Origin: Podarcis gaigeae
Lineage: Eukaryota
DNA: 64,000 nucleotides
Direction: 5' to 3' (one strand)
Assembly (NCBI GenBank): GCA_964106915.2
Contig: OZ066925.1
Positions 4,746 through 59,558 of the stretch are shown here, one piece after another. The position numbers were made by a program, and so were the translations under genes. Each line of letters begins with the position of its first letter. Position 1 is the stretch's first letter. The notes beneath the pieces are model-generated. The model worked only from the letters and a program-made list of their open reading frames with translations. It ran no database searches and was not told the origin of the DNA.

Positions 4746-6052
4746 ATAGAATCATAGAATCATAGAGTTGGAAGAGACCACAAGGGCCATCGAGTCCAAC
4801 CCCCTGCCAAGCAGGAAACACCATCAGAGCACTCCTGACATATGGTTGTCAAGCCTCTGCTTAAAGGCCTCCAAAGAAGGAGACTCCACCACACTCCTTG
4901 TCAGCAAATTCCACTGTCGAACAGCTCTTACTGTCAGGAAGTTCTTCCTAATGTTTAGGTGGAATCTTCTCTCTTGTAGTTTGGATCCATTGCTCCGTGT
5001 CCACTTCTCTGGAGCAGCAGAAAACAACCTTTCTCCCTCCTCTATGTGACATCCTTTTATATATTTGAACATGGCTATCATATCACCCCTTAACCTCCTC
5101 TTCTCCAGGCTAAACATGCCCAGCTCCATTAGCCGTTCCTCATAAGGCATCGTTTCCAGGCCTTTGACCATTTTGGTTGCCCTCCTCTGGACATGTTCCA
5201 GTTTGTCAGTGTCCTTCTTGAACTGTGGTGCCCAGAACTGGACACAGTACTCCAGGTGAGGTCTGACCAGAGCAGAATACAGTGGCACTATTACTTCCCT
5301 TGATCTAGATGCTATAATCCTACTGATGCAGCCCAGAATTGCATTGGCTTTTTTAGCTGCCGCGTCACACTGTTGGCTCATGTCAAGTTTGTGGTCAACC
5401 AAGACTCCTAGATCCTTTTCACATGTACTGCTCTCAAGCCAGGTGTCACCCATCTTGTATTTGTGCCTCTCATTTTTTTTGCCCAAGTGCAATACTTTAC
5501 ATTTCTCCCCATTAAAATTCATCTTGTTTGTTTTGGCCCAGTTCTCTAATCTGTCAAGGTCGTTTTGAAGTGTGATCCTGTCCTCTGGGGTGTTAGCCAC
5601 CCCTCCCAGTTTGGTGTCATATGCAAATTTGATCAGGATGCCCTTGAGTCCATCATCCAAGTCGTTGATAAAGAAGTTGAATAAGACCGGGCCCAAGACA
5701 GAACCCTGTGGCACCCCACTAGTCACTCTTCTCCAGGATGAAGAGGAACCATTGATGAGCACCCTTTGGGTTCGTTCAGTCAGCCAGTTACAAATCCACT
5801 GAGTGGTAGCATAGTCAAGACCACATTTTACCAGCTTCTTTACAAGAATATCATGGGGCACCTCGTCAAATGCCTTGCTGAAATCAAGGTAGGCTACATC
5901 CACTGCATTTCCTTCATCTACCAGGGTTGTAATTCTGTCAAAAAATGAGATCAGGTTAGTCTGACGTGACTTATTTTTCAGAAATCCATGCTGACTCTTT
6001 GTGATCACAGCATTCCTTTCTAGGTGCTCACAGACTGTTTGCTTAATATGTT
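4746..6052 (-). mobile_element. 5'-truncated CR1 LINE with open RT-domain ORF2 (ORF 4824-6119); catalytic FADD changed to FAYD
   Basis: Translation contains [60 protein letters not shown]; (ATTCTATG)n tail at 4746-4765. Confidence 0.95.
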
Positions 6053-7839
6053 GAAGTGTGTTGGGTTCTATCGGGCACCAGGGATTGCATGGTCTGAGTG
6101 TGTGAAAAGGAGAAGGCATCTTGGGGTGGGGTGGGGATTACTGTTCAAGTATAGCAATTTTCATGAATGGTGGCACAGGGTCACTGTTGGACAAGATAAA
6201 GGCAAATAATCTGAAATCCTATCCTTTGTCATGCCTTCCATACTGAAAGTTTAGATTTGGAATCTCTTCTACACAACTAACTCTCCAAAGATGCCCTTAT
6301 TTTAATGAAGCTGCAATAGGTTAAATAGGTTTGAAATACATAATGACAAATTTTGCAAACAAAAAATGGGATTTACTCCTGAGTTGACATGGTTAGGATT
6401 GCAGTCATAGATTGCAAACCCAGAAAGGTCAATCCCTTCTAAAGTCAATAGATTATAATTAATTTGAGTGGTAGTAAGCTAAGTAAAATTCTTCCAGAGG
6501 TTACAAGACAAACTAATACAGGTTGGAGATCTTTAACACATGAGAATAGGTGGAATTAATGCAGATTGATTGAAGTGCACACACTCAATATTGGTTATTA
6601 TTCATATATTCAGATTCCCATTACATTAGAGAACATCTGTTGACTAAGAAAGACCTACAATGAAATATGAAAATAAAGGAAAGCAATTAGTGAGTTGCAT
6701 CAGAGGTCATAGTGACATGATATTCTAATGGAATAAATTGGCACTATTTACCTAAGTATTTTAGCCTCTACTAGCAACTGATTACTAATGAACCAATATA
6801 GGTTAGCATCAATTTTCAAAGAAGCAGAGATGAGATACTGTTTTTAAAAAATCCAAGACCTATGATGATTTCAAGTGTTTCAATAAATCCAATGTGCTTC
6901 TTGGATAAGCTTCTAATCCCAAGTACTGAGCATACAAATTTACATTTGTTTCTTCTCTTTTTGAGACTTCTAGGATGTCATTACAGTAATTTTCAGAAGA
7001 GGCATTGAAGTTGGTTTTTACATATTCTTCCATCTGTTATTCAATTAGAAAGCTCAGAGTAGCTTAGATTGGAACCCATTCAGGCACCGATCAGGTCTAC
7101 ACCCATGTCACAGCACCGGGTACTCTCAGGCTACAGATTTGTAAATGTGTTACAAGCCATTTTGACATTTATTTACTCTTTTGTCAGGCATTTCCCATGC
7201 CACTGCAATTGGTTTATTCCGTACAGGTCTTTTTTCCATTTTGTCACCCACTGATATAGAAATATACATATTTTATGTATATCATAGTGTGTGATAGGCA
7301 AATATTTCTCAGCCATCAACAGATATTTACAAATCAGTTATCTTCCCTGAATGTTCTGTTTCAAAGTTAATGAATCTCCAGAGGGTTATCCCTGTTGTCT
7401 TTTGCAACAAATACTAAAAAGAGTCTTGTTGCACCTGAAAGTCAGAGTCACTGAAGTGTTTGATGGACTATTACAAAGCTGTCTAGAAGTAGGATCTCTT
7501 ACTGCAACTCAGAAGTAAGAGAACTGAGTAAAAAAGTATTGAGAGAAAAAGTCTGTGATGCAATTGTGTGTGTGTGTGTCAAAATGGCAGATGAATGGAA
7601 TATGTTTGACAGACCAGTTTTTTTATGGAGTCTTCCAATATTCCTGTCTCAGACCAAACATTTTTATCCTTTCTGCATTTGATCCAATGCCAATTAACAT
7701 TTGTGCATGGACAATGTAAATAGATTTTCACTCTGAGAAATATCAGGTTATTGTTGTTGTTGTTGTCACACACAGCCTTTTCCCCGACAAAACGCAACGT
7801 GGCTTACAGATAAAAACAAGAATTGCTTAAAAACATATT

Positions 7840-13325: not shown

Positions 13326-13803
13326 CAGCCGCAGGGAGTAGGGTTTCTTGAAGCCTTTTCCAACCAAAGCTACAATAATGCCTGATTGCATTACTGGTTC
13401 CTTGAAGGCAAGAGGTCTATTACTTTAATGCAGCCTTGCCGCCCTCCTGCCCGCTCTGCGTGCGTGTGTGCTTCTAATTGCACAACGGGAAGGGGGGGGG
13501 ACATCTGCATTGGAGCCTTCCGCAGTCCTCTTTACTCGCTTCACAACCGGGATGCTGAGATTCTGATTCTAGTACTTAGGACCGCTCGGAAGACTTGCTT
13601 GCTGGACTGCCTTCGCTTGTGCATCCCAGGAGGTTGGAACACAGAGAGCCTGTACCATCTCGCTTCGAAGGGGGAACACCTGAGAAGTCAGCAAAACAGG
13701 GGGCCACCTCCCCCCACCCCCTTCCTTTTAGAAACGGATCAAGGGGGAAAGGAGGCGAGGAGCAGGAAAACGCCCCGCAGGCCGACGAGCCTCCGCTTCT
13801 AAG

Positions 13804-13824
13804 TTCAGCACCACGGACAGCGCC
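13804..13824 (+). promoter_or_regulatory. RE1/NRSE (REST/NRSF binding site), perfect consensus
   Basis: TTCAGCACCACGGACAGCGCC is identical to the canonical 21-bp RE1 consensus; ~0.9 kb upstream of the ATG of a neuronal gene. Confidence 0.93.
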
Positions 13825-14335
13825 GCCGATCGCTGAGCGAGGCCGCCTCCCGCTTCCCCGGCAGCAGCCCCTCCGGAGCAGCCCCGGCTCGCGGCCAGGG
13901 GCGGAGGGGGGCAGCTGGGGGTGTTTCTTTTGCTTTTGCTTTGAAACTAGGCAAGTGCCGAAGAGTTGCAGAGAGGGGGCTCTTTCCCTGGCGAAGAGGA
14001 GGAGCCGCCGGAGAAGGCAGAGAAGCCGAAGGAGGGGAGAGGAGGATTTTCCCATCCCAGCTCTTTCCAACCCCACCCCCCACCGAGCTCTCCCCCCCTC
14101 CCTCCCTCCCTCCCTCCCTCTCGGTTGCTGGTTATGCTGCCTCTGCTGCTAGTCGTGGCCACGGCAGCGGCGGCGTTTCCTCTTGCTGGCGAGCGATGAA
14201 CGTAGGAGGCGAGAGCGTCTAAGGCAGCTCCTCTGCGGCGCCGGGAGGGTCCCGGTCTCCCGCTCCTTCGCTCTCCTTGATCCCACTGCGTGGCTGGCTC
14301 GCCGGTTGGCGCTGCGTGAGCGCTCCGCGTCGCCG

Positions 14336-14342
14336 TATATAG
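14336..14342 (+). promoter_or_regulatory. TATA-like element (TATATAG)
   Basis: AT-rich motif within the GC-rich core; no ATG between it and the CNTNAP2 start at 14718. Confidence 0.4.
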
Positions 14343-14558
14343 AGAGAGGCGAGCAGGGAAGCTCCCGGAAGCAGCCAGCCCTCCGCTGTGCGCAAGGAAG
14401 GGCTCGCTGCAGCGGTGCCAGCACCGGCAGCGAGAGGCGCTTTCCCTCGCCTCTCCCTTCCTGATACCCCGCTCGAAACCCCTGTTCCCATTAGTACCTC
14501 GAAGAGGGGGCGCAGGACCACCGGGAAAGGAAAAACGAAGTCCCCGGGACTTGAATTC

Positions 14559-14559
14559 G

Positions 14560-14617
<58 letters not shown>
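14559..14617. repeat. (GA)n microsatellite in the probable CNTNAP2 5'UTR
   Basis: Direct reading; ends ~100 nt upstream of the ATG. Confidence 0.95.
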
Positions 14618-14620
<3 letters not shown>

Positions 14621-14717
14621 CCCCCCGGCGAGCAGAGGGCAGATCCGACGGAGAGGAGGATCCGACGGCTCTTCTGCACCTGGCGCCTTGGACTAACGAG
14701 GAGTCTGGAAGCACAGG

Positions 14718-14814
14718 ATGGTGGTGGTTCTCCGAGCCGGCTGCCGGGCAGCTCTCTTCCTGTGGATTTTCAGCAACATCAGCTGCAGAGCCCGGACAGC
14801 TCTGCCGTCCTCCC
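14718..14814 (+). CDS. CNTNAP2: Contactin-associated protein-like 2 (Caspr2), coding exon 1 (signal peptide)
   Basis: Strong Kozak context aggATGG; 97 nt encode MVVVLRAGCRAALFLWIFSNISCRARTALPSS+C, colinear with human [33 protein letters not shown] (recalled); phase-1 donor C|GTGAGT at 14815. Too short for the ORF track. Confidence 0.93.
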
Positions 14815-17800
14815 GTGAGTACCTCGTTTCTGTATTAAACTGGCCAGGGCGGTTCGGGAGGGAGAATCGGATTCCCTAGTCGGAGCTCGAATTCGGTGCT
14901 GGTTTGGTGCTGGTGGCTCTCTTTTGGGCGATCATCGCAACAGCAGGAGGCTTGTGGATCTGGTCCACTATTTCCGTGGCGAGGGTGCTGTTGGAGAGAG
15001 GTTGTTGTTGATCCTCACCTAGACCTAGGCTTGCTAGTGGGCTCTCTCGGAAGTTCGTTGTCCACTCTTCGGTGGGATTGGCAGCGGTTTGACTTTCAAG
15101 TGCCAGGGGCGTTAGTGCGTGCTCAGAAGAGGGGGCGTTGGGCGCTATGACTCGGGATTTTCCTGCTGATCTGGTTGGAGAAGGCTTGATTTAGGAAGAA
15201 ATACAAAGTTTTCCTTCTCAAAGCAAAATCCGTGAAGTTGGACTAAGCCGTTGCCTCTGTGTTTCATTCTTGAGAAAGGGATGTTTGTTACGTAAACGAT
15301 GAGCAAAGAGTTGGTGGGCGAGAGGGTTGCATCCCAGGGCACTTTGAGAGGGTCCTAACTCTGTTGCCAGATCTGTTGAGCTAAGGGCAACTTGAAATAT
15401 TGAAAGTCGAAAATGACTGTAAGCTTTTAGCGTTGGTTGGCGGATGCCAGACTGAAGTATTTAACCACCTCTCCAGACTCTATAGAGAGGGTTGTTGTAG
15501 CGTTATCAAATATACAACTTTTACTTCAAAGATCAGCAGTTTCCTTTTTACGTTCACAGTGATCTGGAAAGCAGACGCTGCACGCCTGTGGCTCAGTGTG
15601 CTAGTTTTGCTCTTTGTTTTGGAGTGTGGGCAGTGCATGCTGTGTTCTTGTAATAAATCATCTTGAAAATTTAATAGCCAATGTACAATTCTTGATATTT
15701 GACTCAGCACCTTTGCATCTGTTATCTTCAGTTCTAGAAAATAAAAAGCACTACTTTATTTATAGGAAGAAGGGGAGAAATGCCAGAACAGATCCTTGAA
15801 GTTTGGAGATTCTTTGCAGTTCCTTGATGATTAAGTAAATGCACTTTGCACTTGATCTGGTGAAATTTCATTTATGTTTATGTGAAATATGCCACACTTG
15901 AGACTTTGCATACCATGGTTGAACCCTGAAAATAACTGGCATTTATCCAGTCCCAAATGCAAGGGATTATTTTCCAATGTCTGTGATACATTTGAAAGAT
16001 ACCATGTATGACACAACGAAAAACATGGTTCAGTATATGAACCAAATAATTGCACACTGCAAACTGGTTTGAGCAATGTCGCGCTCTCTTTCAGAAACAA
16101 TCCAATAAGGATTTTTTGTGCTTGGTGTGCATGGTTTATCCCATATAGATTCTGAATGTGAATGTCTTCCAGTTAATGGTAAAAGGTGGTGTGTAACACC
16201 ACAGGAAGTCAAGAAAGACCTGGTTGTACCTTTCCTCTGGCTGCTGCAAGCTCAGTCCGTTCTAGATGGTGTATTGAAACTCAACCCTTCTACATTTTTC
16301 TTCATGTTCACGTAAATGTACCCTGCATCGTATTTTTAAACTGTCTCTGTATAGCATTGTTGCTGTATCAACTTGCAGGGTAGCTAGTTTGTGTTACCTC
16401 CTAGTGTTGTATCACAATGCAAGAAGTTTGTCCATGTGCACTGATTTGTGGTACTTGTTTTAATGTTACTCAAGCTTGGATGCAGGCATCATACAACCAT
16501 TATTTGCTTGTTTTGAAAAAATTGGACAAGAACCTTCTGTAAGTAAAATTTCCATGTTGTCTTTTTTGAAAACAAAACCAAACCCCATTCTCTACTGTAT
16601 ATGCAACATATGGATATCATATAGCTATACTTTCCTAGTTTCCTAGATTCAATAATTATTTTTTTATTATTACCTTGTGATCCCTTGTTGCCAGTATTGG
16701 AGAAGGCAGAAGAGGGACTGGCTGCTAACAGATGAATAGTTGCATAAAGCAAATCAAGCAATATAAGTACATCTGCTTTCTTGAACCATTATAACAAAAC
16801 CAATTACATCCTGGCAAATGAAAAGTGCATGAAAAACATTCCTGCAGAGAATCGTAAAGGTATATCCTTCCAAGTGACAGTGAAGGAGCAAGAAAGGAGG
16901 TTTAGTTTGCTCTCAGATTTGGTAATGTTACTTGAACACTGTGATATGTAAGACTTTGACAGATGAAATTAATCTGCAAACTGATGTCCAGTTTGATTGC
17001 GCCAAAGAAATTAGTTTGTTTGTTTTTTGAGAGGGTCACCCATTACAGAGCCACCCATTACTGAGCATTTTTGAAGTTTTCTGCCTTAATGTCCTGCTGT
17101 TGAAATGGGAACTGGAAGACTAAACTGGACTATTTACTGCATATGGAGTTCTGAGGGTGATCTACAGCCCCTCAAAGGCAGTGGCAGAACTCTGTTGATT
17201 TTAATGCAGCTGGAAGATGCCACCCACAAATACCTTGAAAATGCAGGGATGACCAGCTAGGTTGCTGAATGGCTGTTGAAATGGGAGCTGAAAGATTAAA
17301 CTAAAGGACTATTTACTAGGAAATGCAAGGCTATCTTTGGTTGTGTGTGGAAATTGCTGAAGTCACTGCACATTTTCATGTGGAAGTATGCACAAAGGAG
17401 TGTGAAATATGACAGAGCAACACCAAAAGTTTACTTGCACTCGTTCTACAAGTTACTGTTTTGAAAGCTGCTCCTTCACACAAGAAACTACATATTGCTG
17501 TATAGTTGGTTCTATTGTGCTAGAACTAGAGCACCAAGTATTTGTATTATTTTTAGTAGAGAGAGCTGAAAATACTTCTTTTTAAACTTTTACATATTTT
17601 TCCATACAGTTTGGCCAAGTCGTTTCACTAAAAATAATTATTATTAGTTGAAAGGCCATCAAGAGCAAACGTTCACATTTCAATATGACCATTATATAGT
17701 TTAAAATAAATATGAGTTTCAGATATACCATAATAATAATGCAATGTAAATAAAATGTTCTATCCCTTGTGAACTGTACCGTATTGGAAGGAAACATTTA

Positions 17801-24555: not shown

Positions 24556-25470
24556 ATGTACATATATGGTGTTATAGATTTAAGAATTTATAAACCCTAT
24601 AAATTAATAAATGCTAGGATTTTGGTTATTTGGGATATCAAGGGTGAATGCAAGCTGAGAAAAGTTCCTGGACTATCTTATGCAAAACAACCTGGCTGAC
24701 CTATGGCTATCAAAATAAAAATTGATGGACATTAACAATACAAGAGAACTCCTCCCCCCTTGCCCTGAGGTGTGACTAGAGTTTGGTGATTTGGAAGTCT
24801 GGCTGGGAAGAATAAGGAGGAGGAAGAGCTGGAATCCATCTTGGGCAGGCTGGTTGAAGGCTCTCTGCACTGCAGTGGGGGACCAGTGGGGTTGCCATAT
24901 TCCAAAGAGCAAAAAAGAGGACAAATTTTTCGACTTCTGCTTTTAACTATGGGTCGCTATGGAGACTCTCATTTTAATGTTTTGTGAGCAGAGCTGCAGA
25001 ATTGGGCACATCCCATTGAGCTATAATTCTTTACTTTGTCCTTTTTGTACTAGAGATTCCCCACTATGTTTTTTTAAATGCCTGACTGTATCCCCAGATG
25101 AACCACATCAACAGCACTTCATTCCAGTGCCCACCCCCAAAACAAAAACAGCACTTCTGAGAAAAGCGTCCAGAATGCCCCTTTTCCACACTGACGTTAT
25201 TAGAAGAAACCCACAGCTGCCCACTGTCTCCCTGCTTCTAGGGAAAGGAAGCTAACTAGATGCCACACACCTGCTAATTTAACAGGCCAAGAAAGTAGCA
25301 ATGCCTTTTTGGCTCATTTAACCAAATGAGAGGTAGGTTGGTCTGAGATTACCCTCAAGGCTGGCCCAACCAGCACTGAGAAGGCAGGGGCCTGTACAGC
25401 CGATGAGCCCCTGATGACGTCCTTGCCCCTCCTCCCTGCTACCTCTGGGGCTGCCTCTGCACCCCTTCAC

Positions 25471-25719
25471 CCTCTGGAAGTGGCCCCTGCAGCGCTGGCA
25501 CTGGTTGCCAATCCATCTGGGTGGGCACTCACACTGGTTGGTGCTGGCCTGGCAGCACCCTTTGTTGGCACATGACTTGTCACACATCTTCGCCTTGGCA
25601 GCCACTCCAGCTCTGGCCACTGCCAGACCCAGCAGGAAAAGGACAGTGGCCAGCCAGAGCGGGCACCTGTGGAGGAGGAGGGCAAAGAGGCCACGCCACC
25701 TGCGGGCCCACTGCTCCAT
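25471..25719 (-). pseudogene. ATRN: Attractin (ATRN) exon 1-like fragment: signal peptide + EGF-like domain, CpG-decayed
   Basis: AKAKMCDKSCANKGCCQASTNQCECPPRWIGNQCQRCRGHF aligns without gaps to human ATRN AEAKECDRPCVNGGRCNPGTGQCVCPAGWVGEQCQHCGGRF (recalled); hydrophobic leader upstream; similarity stops at the exon-1 end and the CUB domain does not follow. Confidence 0.8.
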
Positions 25720-26071
25720 CACCTGAGGTAAAATGTACAGAAATGTGGAGAACAGAGCCCTGGGAGGAGGTGGGCAGCAGCTGCAAGAGCCTCTGCCTCT
25801 CAGCTTTGCACTGACGGGCAGTGGCTAACGAGGGCTGCGGCATGGCCTCCTTCTTCCTGGAGTGACAGAGGTCCGTGAGGCTCAACCTTAGTGCTCACTC
25901 TCCTCCTCTCACAACAATTCTGAGGAGAAGGAGGAGGCGGAGCATTGTGTGCCCCCACCCCCAGCATCCGCTCCCAATGACGTTGGCGTTGAAAGACCCT
26001 GGCGGTGGAGGGGGGGTAGGGAGGGAGATAAAAATAAGAGAGACCATAGAGAGTGGGAGTGCTAGTGTGCC

Positions 26072-26393
26072 TGAAATATACTCAGAGTCGCAAAGTGATT
26101 TCATGCTCTTTATTCAGCTCATAGTGGTGAGGAGGAATGAATGAATGTCCCCTCAAAGTATCTGCTTTATATACATTATTTACACAATGGGTTGCACATG
26201 ATTGGCTAATTCTGGAATTCTACTGTAAGCCAATCAGGTTGTGGATTCACTTATATCTGGAGCATGATTGGGTGGTTCCTGCCAACCAATCATATTGCTG
26301 CATTGTTCTAGGACCAATCAGACTGCTGCATTCTGAATCCTATTGTTCTAGGACCAATCAGATGTTGGATCCTATTCAACTCAGTACATAACA
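26072..26393 (-). mobile_element. Solo LTR, copy 1
   Basis: Minus strand TGTTATG...TTTCA; multiple CCAAT boxes, TATATAAA (26173-26166), AATAAA (26114-26109); near-identical to 46753-47082; flanks gtgcc/ccgcc match imperfectly. Confidence 0.85.
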
Positions 26394-27184
26394 CCGCCAC
26401 AGGCAAGTGCCTCTCTACAGCAGAACATCATAGAGAGGCTAATCTGCCTATGCATATTATGAAACTCAGCCAAGTCTATGGCTTTCTAAACTGAGAAGCA
26501 AGAAGCAAGGATACAAAATTGAGTGGATAAGAAATACAGTACAATATTTTCCTTTTGACTGTGCATGCTCTAAAAATGGATTTCTCTAGCAAAACATAGG
26601 TATGTCTGATAATGAGCTTGCTAATAGTTATCTAATAACATTATCATATATTACCCAAGTATATGGAAATGATGCATGATCCTGATCTATAGTGTGTTGA
26701 ATCTGCAGTTATTTCTGAAGAGATGTTGTGATGGGAGTCAATATGGTTATGTGCAAGGAAGCTGTAATATGAATTATAGCTTTGCTTGGGTGGATTATAC
26801 TTTTATTGGTAAACATATTCAGGCATTGATTTTCTGCCCCCCCCATTAATAATTGAAATACATGCAGAGAGAAATGTAACTTAAAAAATCATTCAAAGGC
26901 TATTAAGTGTTGCTGCATCCTAAGGCCCAGTTCAGCACCCCACTCTGTTCAGCAAACCACTTAAAAATTTGCTGAGATGTGTGTTTCTCTCTCTGTGTAT
27001 ACTGAACTATGACCAAGATACATGGAATACTACAAAATTGGGTCCTATGATAATGTCACTGGCAGTAGCAAGGCTTTATGTGTTAGTAATACAGAATGAT
27101 AGTACGGGTGTTAAGAGAGAACAACAGCTATATTACCATATCATTTTCATGGGATTTCTCAGATACTGAGAAACTAGGGCAAAT

Positions 27185-57944: not shown

Positions 57945-59558
57945 CTTTTTATTTATACCCCGTCCATCAGGCTGGGTTTCCTCAGCCACTCTGGGTGGCT
58001 CCCAATAGAATACTAAAAACATAATAAACCTCAAACATTAAAGACTTCCCTAATCAGGGCTGTCTTCAAATGTTTTCTAAAAGTCAGGTAGTTGTTTATT
58101 TCCTTGACATCTGCTGGGAGGGCATTCCACAGGGCAGGCGCCACTACCGAGAAGACCCTCTGCCTGGTTCCCTGTAACCTCACTTCTTGCAGGGAGGGAA
58201 CCACCAGAAGGCCCTCGGAGCTGGACCTCAGTCTCCAGGCAGAAAGATGGGGGTGGAGACACTCCTTTAGGTATACTGGACCAAGGCTACTTAGGTCTTT
58301 AAAGGTCAGCACCAACACTTTGAATTGTGATCAGAAACGTACTGGGAGCCAATGTAGGTTTTCAGGACCGGTGTTATATGGTCTCGGCAGCCGCTCCCAG
58401 TCACCAGTCTAGCTGCCGCATTCTGGATTAGTTGTAGTTTCTAGATCACCTTCAAAGGCAGCCCCACATAGAGTGCACTGCAGTAGTCCAAGTGGGAGAT
58501 AACCAGAGCATGCACCACTCTGGCAAGACAGTTCGCGGGCAAATAGGGTCTCAGCCTGCATACCAGATGGAGCTGGTGGACAGCTGTTCTGGACACAGAA
58601 TTGACCTGCGCCTCCATGGACAGCTGTGAGTCCAGAATGATGCCCAGGTAGTGTACCTGGTGCTTCAGAGGCACAGTTACCCCATTCAGGACCAGGGAGT
58701 CCTCCACATCTGCCCGCTCCCTGTCCCCCAGAAACAGTACTTCTGTCTTGTCAGGATTCAACCTCAATCCATTAGACGCCATCCATCCTCCAACCGCCTC
58801 CAGGCACTCACACAGGACCTTCACAGCCTTCACTGGTTTTGATTTAAAAGAGAGGTAGAGCTGGGTATCTTCCGCATACTGATGAACACCCAGTCCAAAC
58901 CCCCTGATGATCTCTCCCAGCGGTTTCATATGGATGTTAAAAAGCATAGGAGAGAGGACGGAACCCTGAGGCACCCCACAAATGAAAGCCCAGGGGTCTG
59001 AACACCCATCCCCCAACACCACTTTCTGGACATGGCCCAGGAGGAAGGAGCAGAACCACTGTATAACAGTGCCCCCAGCTCCCAGCCCCTTTTGATGGTC
59101 CAGAAGGTCCACATTCTTGGAGGTAACAGATTGGAATCGATCCCATGCAACTTGACTAGACAAGACTCTAGCACTCTCCTGCCCTGGCCCTGCTCCCATG
59201 GTGGAGTTTACCTCCTTCCGAAACTAACTGACTTTATCTGCAAAAAATTTTTTCAAAATCATTGCAGGAGATCTTGGGGTCCTTACCCAATGGCACAGGT
59301 GGTTCCGTTAAATTATGAACCACCTGAAGAGTCTCCTGCTGCTGTTTTCTGCAGATGCAATAGAGGCAGTGAAGATGGTCCTCTTCGCCGTCACTATTGC
59401 CACTAGGTAGTATCAACATTGAGCTCTAACCTGTGTCCGGTCTGATTCAGAATGAGTCCGGCACTCTAGCTGTCTCAGCAATTGTTTCATCACCCTCAGC
59501 CCTGGAGAAAACAACAGGGCTGACTGGGCTCCATGCAATTGGAGATGGGGCTCTGGAG
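57945..59558 (-). mobile_element. L2 LINE, 3' part (RT domain, internally deleted, YADD changed to YAED)
   Basis: ORFs 58441-59199 ([45 protein letters not shown]) and 58031-58318 (FSVVAPALWNALP). Confidence 0.92.

Follow-up and report, generated by a model that had tools for sequence, protein, structure and literature searches.

An orphan, CpG-depleted copy of attractin exon 1, probably a pseudogene fragment, on the minus strand of a presumed CNTNAP2 intron

The window analyzed here, a stretch of genomic DNA of 64,000 nucleotides, contains a CpG island at positions 13500-15500 (GC content 0.59-0.67, CpG observed/expected ratio (o/e) 0.67-0.78). The N-terminus encoded by an exon inside this island resembles that of CNTNAP2, and the exon is probably the first exon of CNTNAP2; searches of the PDB and the Atlas returned no match for it. 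Runs of (GA)n/(CT)n, implied by the ER- and SL-repeat translations of ORFs, occur at ~13.2-13.3 kb and 14.5-14.6 kb. On the opposite strand, ~10.5 kb downstream of this exon, lies an ORF related to exon 1 of attractin (ATRN). Two ORFs with reverse-transcriptase domains (RVT_1), at 4824-6119 (minus strand, 431 aa, E 1e-23) and 58441-59199 (minus strand, 252 aa, E 2e-16), are LINE-type remnants in the same intron as the ATRN copy. The features to which the text refers are as follows:

14718-14815, plus strand: signal-peptide-like first exon followed by a GTGAGT donor, inside the CpG island.
24889-24985, no strand assigned: medium-copy repeat adjoining the single-copy block on one side (summed word depth ~7e4, loose contig ends piled up at 24889).
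24986-25317, minus strand: what is left of the single-copy block on the downstream side of the ORF (at single-copy depth in both organism G and organism H; no significant match to the ATRN loci L001-L003).
25318-25470, minus strand: G-rich read-through tail of the ORF, intron-like and not CUB (BLASTP, Pfam, relatives).
25465-25473, minus strand: retained splice-donor-like site, AGG/GTGAAG (CAG/GTGAG in true ATRN loci), read from the sequence, at which the protein similarity ends.
25471-25719, minus strand: coding segment derived from ATRN exon 1, comprising the start codon, a leader that resembles a signal peptide and the first EGF-like module with its seven cysteines (HMMER, alignments A1-A3, blastn).
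25723-26071, minus strand: single-copy DNA preceding the ATG, rich in GC (0.57) but poor in CpG, which may be a decayed ATRN 5' region.
26072-26443, no strand assigned: high-copy interspersed repeat adjoining the block, not ATRN-derived (summed word depth ~1e6, where single-copy DNA gives ~50-80; many contigs end at 26072).

The minus-strand ORF (25318-25722) opens with GTG at 25722, has an ATG at 25719 and stops at 25318-25320, which gives 134 codons counted from the GTG and 133 from the ATG. Its translation combines a hydrophobic leader with a single EGF-like cysteine module, and its first 83 residues resemble ATRN exon 1 from the start codon to the splice donor. In an exhaustive HMMER search of 1.84 billion proteins, 38 matched at E ≤ 0.001. 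The best were ATRN exon-1 fragments, which ranked above other EGF proteins, with P0001 (93 aa, E 8.2e-11, 56% identity) at the top. Most of the matches are short gene calls whose C-terminal ...QCQHCGGRFR faces query residue 82-83, many of them ending exactly there; these calls are attractin exon-1 fragments. One full-length match, P0025, is the named Attractin of Labeo rohita (E 2.4e-5), and P0005, P0003 and P0007, which were left out of the alignments, have the appearance of ATRN N-termini from human or another mammal. A two-row-profile word search added five tetrapod-type exon-1 fragments, P0042 to P0046. In BLASTP, P0045 and P0001 were closest to the ORF, followed by fish ATRN and then by ATRNL1-type sequences. 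These searches and the alignments confirmed the sequence-only reading, which had noticed the ATG at 25719, the hydrophobic leader and the EGF-like module and had matched them to ATRN exon 1.

Alignment of 16 sequences showed that the ORF keeps all 16 columns that are invariant in ATRN/ATRNL1 N-termini, including seven Cys as well as D, K, W, G, Q and F; the earlier claim of a frame open for 133 codons with its cysteine scaffold retained (7/7 Cys) thus holds. In the same alignment four of the six near-invariant columns are replaced (G62N, G69R, H77R and R81H). The copy shares with ATRN exon 1 the start context, the leader, the pattern of seven cysteines together with the invariant D, K, W, G, Q and F residues, and the placement of a GT donor, and with P0001 and P0045 the tetrapod-type extra residue and the QCEC motif. 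ATRNL1 and generic EGF or laminin-EGF modules have the same cysteine scaffold, and the CDKSC motif is found in ATRNL1-type matches too, but the loop length of the copy (CQASTNQC) and its higher scores point to ATRN. The comparison supports descent of the ORF from ATRN and not from ATRNL1 or a generic EGF module. Pfam returned EGF matches below the gathering threshold only (EGF_laminin 14.8 bits versus 21, EGF_2 14.8 versus 22.1), and searches of the PDB and the Atlas with the ORF gave only generic EGF/laminin matches. A word search of 5.8 billion clusters revealed no similar protein of 74-235 aa, a range that does not include full-length ATRN, and a literature search for an attractin exon-1 pseudogene returned nothing relevant.

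Genuine ATRN exon 1 was compared with the ORF at the nucleotide level via three genomic contigs, L001, L002 and L003. The identity of the ORF to these loci is 65-72% (E 1e-18 to 1e-22), collinear and with a GT donor at the end; against L003, blastn covered 25717-25477 with 65% identity over 249 nt (E 1.6e-22). The nucleotide alignment begins at the start context, which reads CAGGTGATGGAG in the copy and CAGCAGATGGAG in L003. At the other end, the donor region of the copy has 3-4 extra nucleotides relative to the true ATRN loci. An extension of the similarity past the donor into the start of the CUB domain, produced by HMMER and MAFFT, was rejected, since BLASTP of the ORF tail against ATRN residues 86-330 gave E 0.13 and since decay should be milder in a genuine exon 2 than in exon 1, not stronger. 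Pfam detected no CUB domain in the tail, which has no relatives. No spliced exon-exon junction was found, as the donor is kept and the sequence after it is not exon 2. When full-length Attractin was searched against the whole 64 kb by tblastn, the exon-1 piece was the sole match, and the copy is therefore an orphan within the window. Because the similarity stops at a retained donor, no CUB follows and no other ATRN exon lies in the window, the copy is not a processed retrocopy. The sequence-only reading had reached the same view of the exon boundary, of the missing CUB domain and of the orphan status.

The region 25300-26050 has a GC content of 0.59 and a CpG o/e of 0.24 and is set in DNA of 0.35-0.45 GC; within the block the CpG o/e is 0.18-0.34, compared with 0.20 for the whole window. 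True ATRN exon 1 in the three loci is a CpG island of ~80% GC (in L001, GC 0.81-0.82 and CpG o/e 0.9-1.0), whereas the copy is no CpG-island first exon. In the EGF part, at columns where L001-L003 agree, all 11 conserved CpGs have been lost, four to TG, five to CA and two otherwise. Measured against these proxy loci, 11 of 22 CpG sites have changed versus 18 of 88 other sites (Fisher P 0.013), and GC>AT changes in the copy number 21 versus 3 AT>GC. These counts support the view that the copy is a former CpG-island exon eroded by CpG deamination, as had been proposed from the replacements in its translation. Of the individual replacements then attributed to CpG deamination, R>C, R>H, G>R and D>N indeed coincide with CpGs that have been lost, whereas the supposed G>S is P>S against the proxy loci.

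Sequencing runs of eight organisms contain 31-81% of the 31-mers of 24800-26600. In two relatives (organisms G and H), which are ~4-5% diverged from the window, the block 24986-26038 has single-copy depth (~17-220, mostly 45-190), while 24824-24985 reaches a depth of ~7e4 and 26039-26443 a depth of 0.4-3.3e6. From these word depths, the block is a unique sequence bounded by interspersed repeats. It is thus present in both relatives, and in single copy, two points that the earlier reading had raised for checking. Two small runs, X16 and X18 (~85 Mb, guessed to be RNA), contain the flanking repeats only, and no run among those containing the block is on record as RNA. A further repeat, at 24581-24661, has a summed depth of ~1.3e4, and a search of the flanking repeats with ARAGORN gave no tRNA-like head.

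Considered together with these observations, the copy is probably a decayed, non-functional and unprocessed fragment pseudogene of ATRN. Most likely, the coding part of ATRN exon 1 with its donor was copied as genomic DNA, as an unprocessed partial duplicate; the retained donor, with no exon 2 after it, makes copying of genomic DNA preferable to copying of spliced mRNA. The copy is located on the minus strand within ~700 bp of formerly GC-rich DNA, and away from its promoter context it would have lost the CpG-island state. Methylation-driven deamination of CpGs and a drift from GC to AT would subsequently have eroded it, and its present evolution would be as neutral as that of its flanks. The copy differs from the ATRN gene in having neither the CUB domain nor later exons, in its lack of a CpG island and in the replacement of the near-invariant G, G, H and R. 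It resembles unprocessed duplicated pseudogene fragments and orphan exons in its preserved exon-intron boundary, intronic site, single copy and neutral drift, although that class is normally defined by non-coding flanks homologous to the parent and the copy is known here from the exon and the donor. With processed pseudogenes it shares the nature of a gene-derived piece at an unlinked site and the LINE reverse-transcriptase remnants in the window, but it lacks an exon-exon junction and a poly(A) tail, and a clear target-site duplication is missing as well.

An unlikely alternative is that the copy is a semi-processed retrocopy, made via RNA from an unspliced or intron-retaining ATRN 5' transcript, in which case it would comprise exon 1 and the start of intron 1 and no promoter. 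Such an origin would agree with the presence of only the 5' end of the gene, with the retained donor and with the reverse-transcriptase ORFs of LINE type in the window. It would also agree with the flanks, for which homology to the ATRN promoter is not demonstrable. Against the distant loci L001-L003, the flanks of the copy gave weak, non-collinear matches, with z of 3.4-3.8 only for L003 and at unmatched distances, and the best local matches were rejected as homology because they are C-rich low-complexity sequence or non-collinear. L001-L003 share no repeats with the window. The alignment between L001 and L003 is itself limited to the exon and ~50 nt upstream, and since the loci's own flanks barely align to each other, they cannot decide on flank homology. 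The 45 nt directly upstream of the ATG of the copy are AT- and pyrimidine-rich, which by our own reading is unlike a decayed GC-rich leader or 5' UTR and fits the RNA-mediated route.

The DNA further upstream speaks the other way, as ~330 nt of GC-rich, CpG-decayed sequence precede the ATG. All three true ATRN loci have a full cAMP-response-type element (CRE), TGACGTCA, 226-245 nt before the ATG, and judging from this recurrence TGACGTCA looks like a conserved attractin promoter element. The element is palindromic and is followed by TCG; it is located at ~414-421 in L001, ~390-397 in L002 and ~418-425 in L003. The copy has a CRE half-site, ACGTCA, at -264 (25978-25983) with some flanking matches, and its closeness to the position of the promoters' CRE is suggestive of a trace of the ATRN promoter. 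The background expectation for the half-site is 0.0125 per 80 nt, and the match was made post hoc among eight motifs. The C-rich match to L001 and L002 falls on the other side of the CRE, which counts against promoter homology. A second CRE-like site, GACGTCATC at 25407-25424 on the minus strand, lies 56 nt after the donor and is closer to the 9-mer around the CRE of the promoters than is the upstream half-site.

A possible target-site duplication, which would favor the retrocopy, is the exact 10-nt direct repeat CCCACCCCCA at 25130-25139 and 25954-25963, whose two copies enclose the greater part of the ATRN-like block. No other candidate for such a duplication was found, but the 10-mer is of low complexity and probably arose by chance, has no adjacent tail and is not located at the GC boundary; we rejected it as a target-site duplication and regard it as a weak lead. 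The sense 3' end of the copy lacks a poly(A) tract, the longest run there being A7 at 25069-25075, and the A-rich DNA beside the candidate duplication is on the wrong strand for a retrocopy of pre-mRNA. Within the pseudogene interpretation, DNA-level copying is therefore favored with some confidence over its main alternative, an unspliced-RNA intermediate.

More improbable is that the copy is, or has been, exapted, whether as first exon of a lineage-specific, antisense or chimeric transcript or as a gene for a small secreted EGF-like peptide. Exaptation would explain why the start codon, the leader, all seven cysteines and a GT donor fit for use have survived the heavy CpG decay, and the high-copy repeat just upstream carries CCAAT and TATA-like motifs in the sense orientation. 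The open frame as such is nothing unusual: ORFs of 97 and 101 aa occur in other frames of this GC-rich block, and the 133-codon frame is a by-product of GC-rich sequence. The Nei-Gojobori dN between the copy and a proxy ancestor is 0.295, as compared with 0.05-0.06 for L001/L002 versus L003, and omega is 0.42 for the copy (with the proxy ancestor derived from distant species) versus 0.15-0.18 between L001/L002 and L003. In a permutation analysis the observed changes were kept and redistributed among sites of the same class. The probability of finding no stop was 0.34, that of keeping all seven cysteines ~0.011 and that of 16 or fewer amino-acid changes ~0.008, so that cysteine retention and the small number of replacements are unlikely (P ~0.01) under random placement. 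With a differently tie-broken ancestor both probabilities, for cysteine retention and for the replacement count, were 0.005, and a repeat run gave 0.02 and 0.01.

These values hinge on the unseen parent sequence. Since the ancestor is a proxy from distant species, synonymous changes of the working ATRN lineage are charged to the copy. When 6 of the 15 synonymous-type differences were assigned to the unseen parent, the probabilities for cysteines and replacements rose to 0.05 and 0.12, and with 9 of the 15 to 0.10 and 0.31. Such a correction is plausible because L001 and L003 differ by seven synonymous changes in the same exon block, and the retention of seven cysteines together with the low replacement count is thus a weak, parent-dependent hint of past constraint.

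The relatives argue against exaptation more directly. Among the differences listed, organism H differs from the window at no fewer than 17 positions of the 405-nt ORF (at least 4.2%), as compared with ~2-3% in the unique flanks. Eleven of the 17 listed ORF differences are nonsynonymous, and those in the exon part are R84W, R77C, K54R, S50L, M46K and C20R. Many of the differences to the relatives are CpG/TpG alternations; codon 50, for example, is TCA in the window and TTG in organism H, consistent with derivation of both from TCG. In the ORF tail (25318-25470) the relatives differ at no fewer than 8 of 153 nt among the differences listed. Over 25299-25821, 77% of which is ORF, contig 5 of run X12 has a net deficit of 2 nt relative to the window; the length change probably falls inside the ORF, and a frameshift in the species of run X12 is likely. 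Changes that are mostly nonsynonymous, CpG-driven and at least as frequent as in the flanks suggest that the copy now evolves like neutral DNA. Exaptation is also hard to reconcile with the replacement of the near-invariant Gly and His of the module, with the lack of a similar protein of this size in the clusters searched and with the lack of RNA runs among those containing the block. The notion that the ORF is raw material for a small secreted EGF peptide, entertained in the sequence-only reading, was over-optimistic as to function and found no positive support.

That the copy is an artefact of assembly, or the genuine ATRN exon 1 put in the wrong place in the scaffold, is very improbable. 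Misassembly is common for first exons rich in GC, and the parental locus was not among the sequences analyzed. Single contigs of the two relatives, however, span 24833-25952 (organism H, run X14) and 25299-25821 (organism G, run X12) at single-copy depth. These independent contigs are continuous and join the block to the same left flank, which excludes a mis-join peculiar to this assembly. The depletion of CpGs and the replaced conserved residues are furthermore unlike a working ATRN exon 1. Finally, an EGF-like ORF that arose by chance in GC-rich DNA, with no relation to ATRN, would account for the sub-threshold Pfam scores and the generic structural matches, but is refuted by the HMMER ranking (E 8e-11 among 1.84 billion proteins, with top matches that are almost all ATRN N-termini), by the DNA similarity to three ATRN loci and by the collinearity of leader, start context and donor with ATRN.

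The copy appears to be an ordinary, neatly bounded gene-fragment pseudogene and not a new gene, and its importance beyond annotation is small. For annotation, we recommend masking the ORF as a pseudo-exon, lest gene predictors place a non-existent secreted EGF peptide or ATRN start inside the intron. The copy also provides a natural example of a CpG-island first exon that, outside its promoter context, loses every conserved CpG, mostly to TG or CA, and a datable single-copy marker common to several related species. Were the exaptation alternative true, a new secreted peptide would have been born from a stray first exon.

The high-copy repeat at 26072-26443, whose left edge may reach ~26057, has internal subrepeats of 28-40 nt with CCAATCAG, the number of which varies between copies, and it is also found in the more distant organisms I and J.
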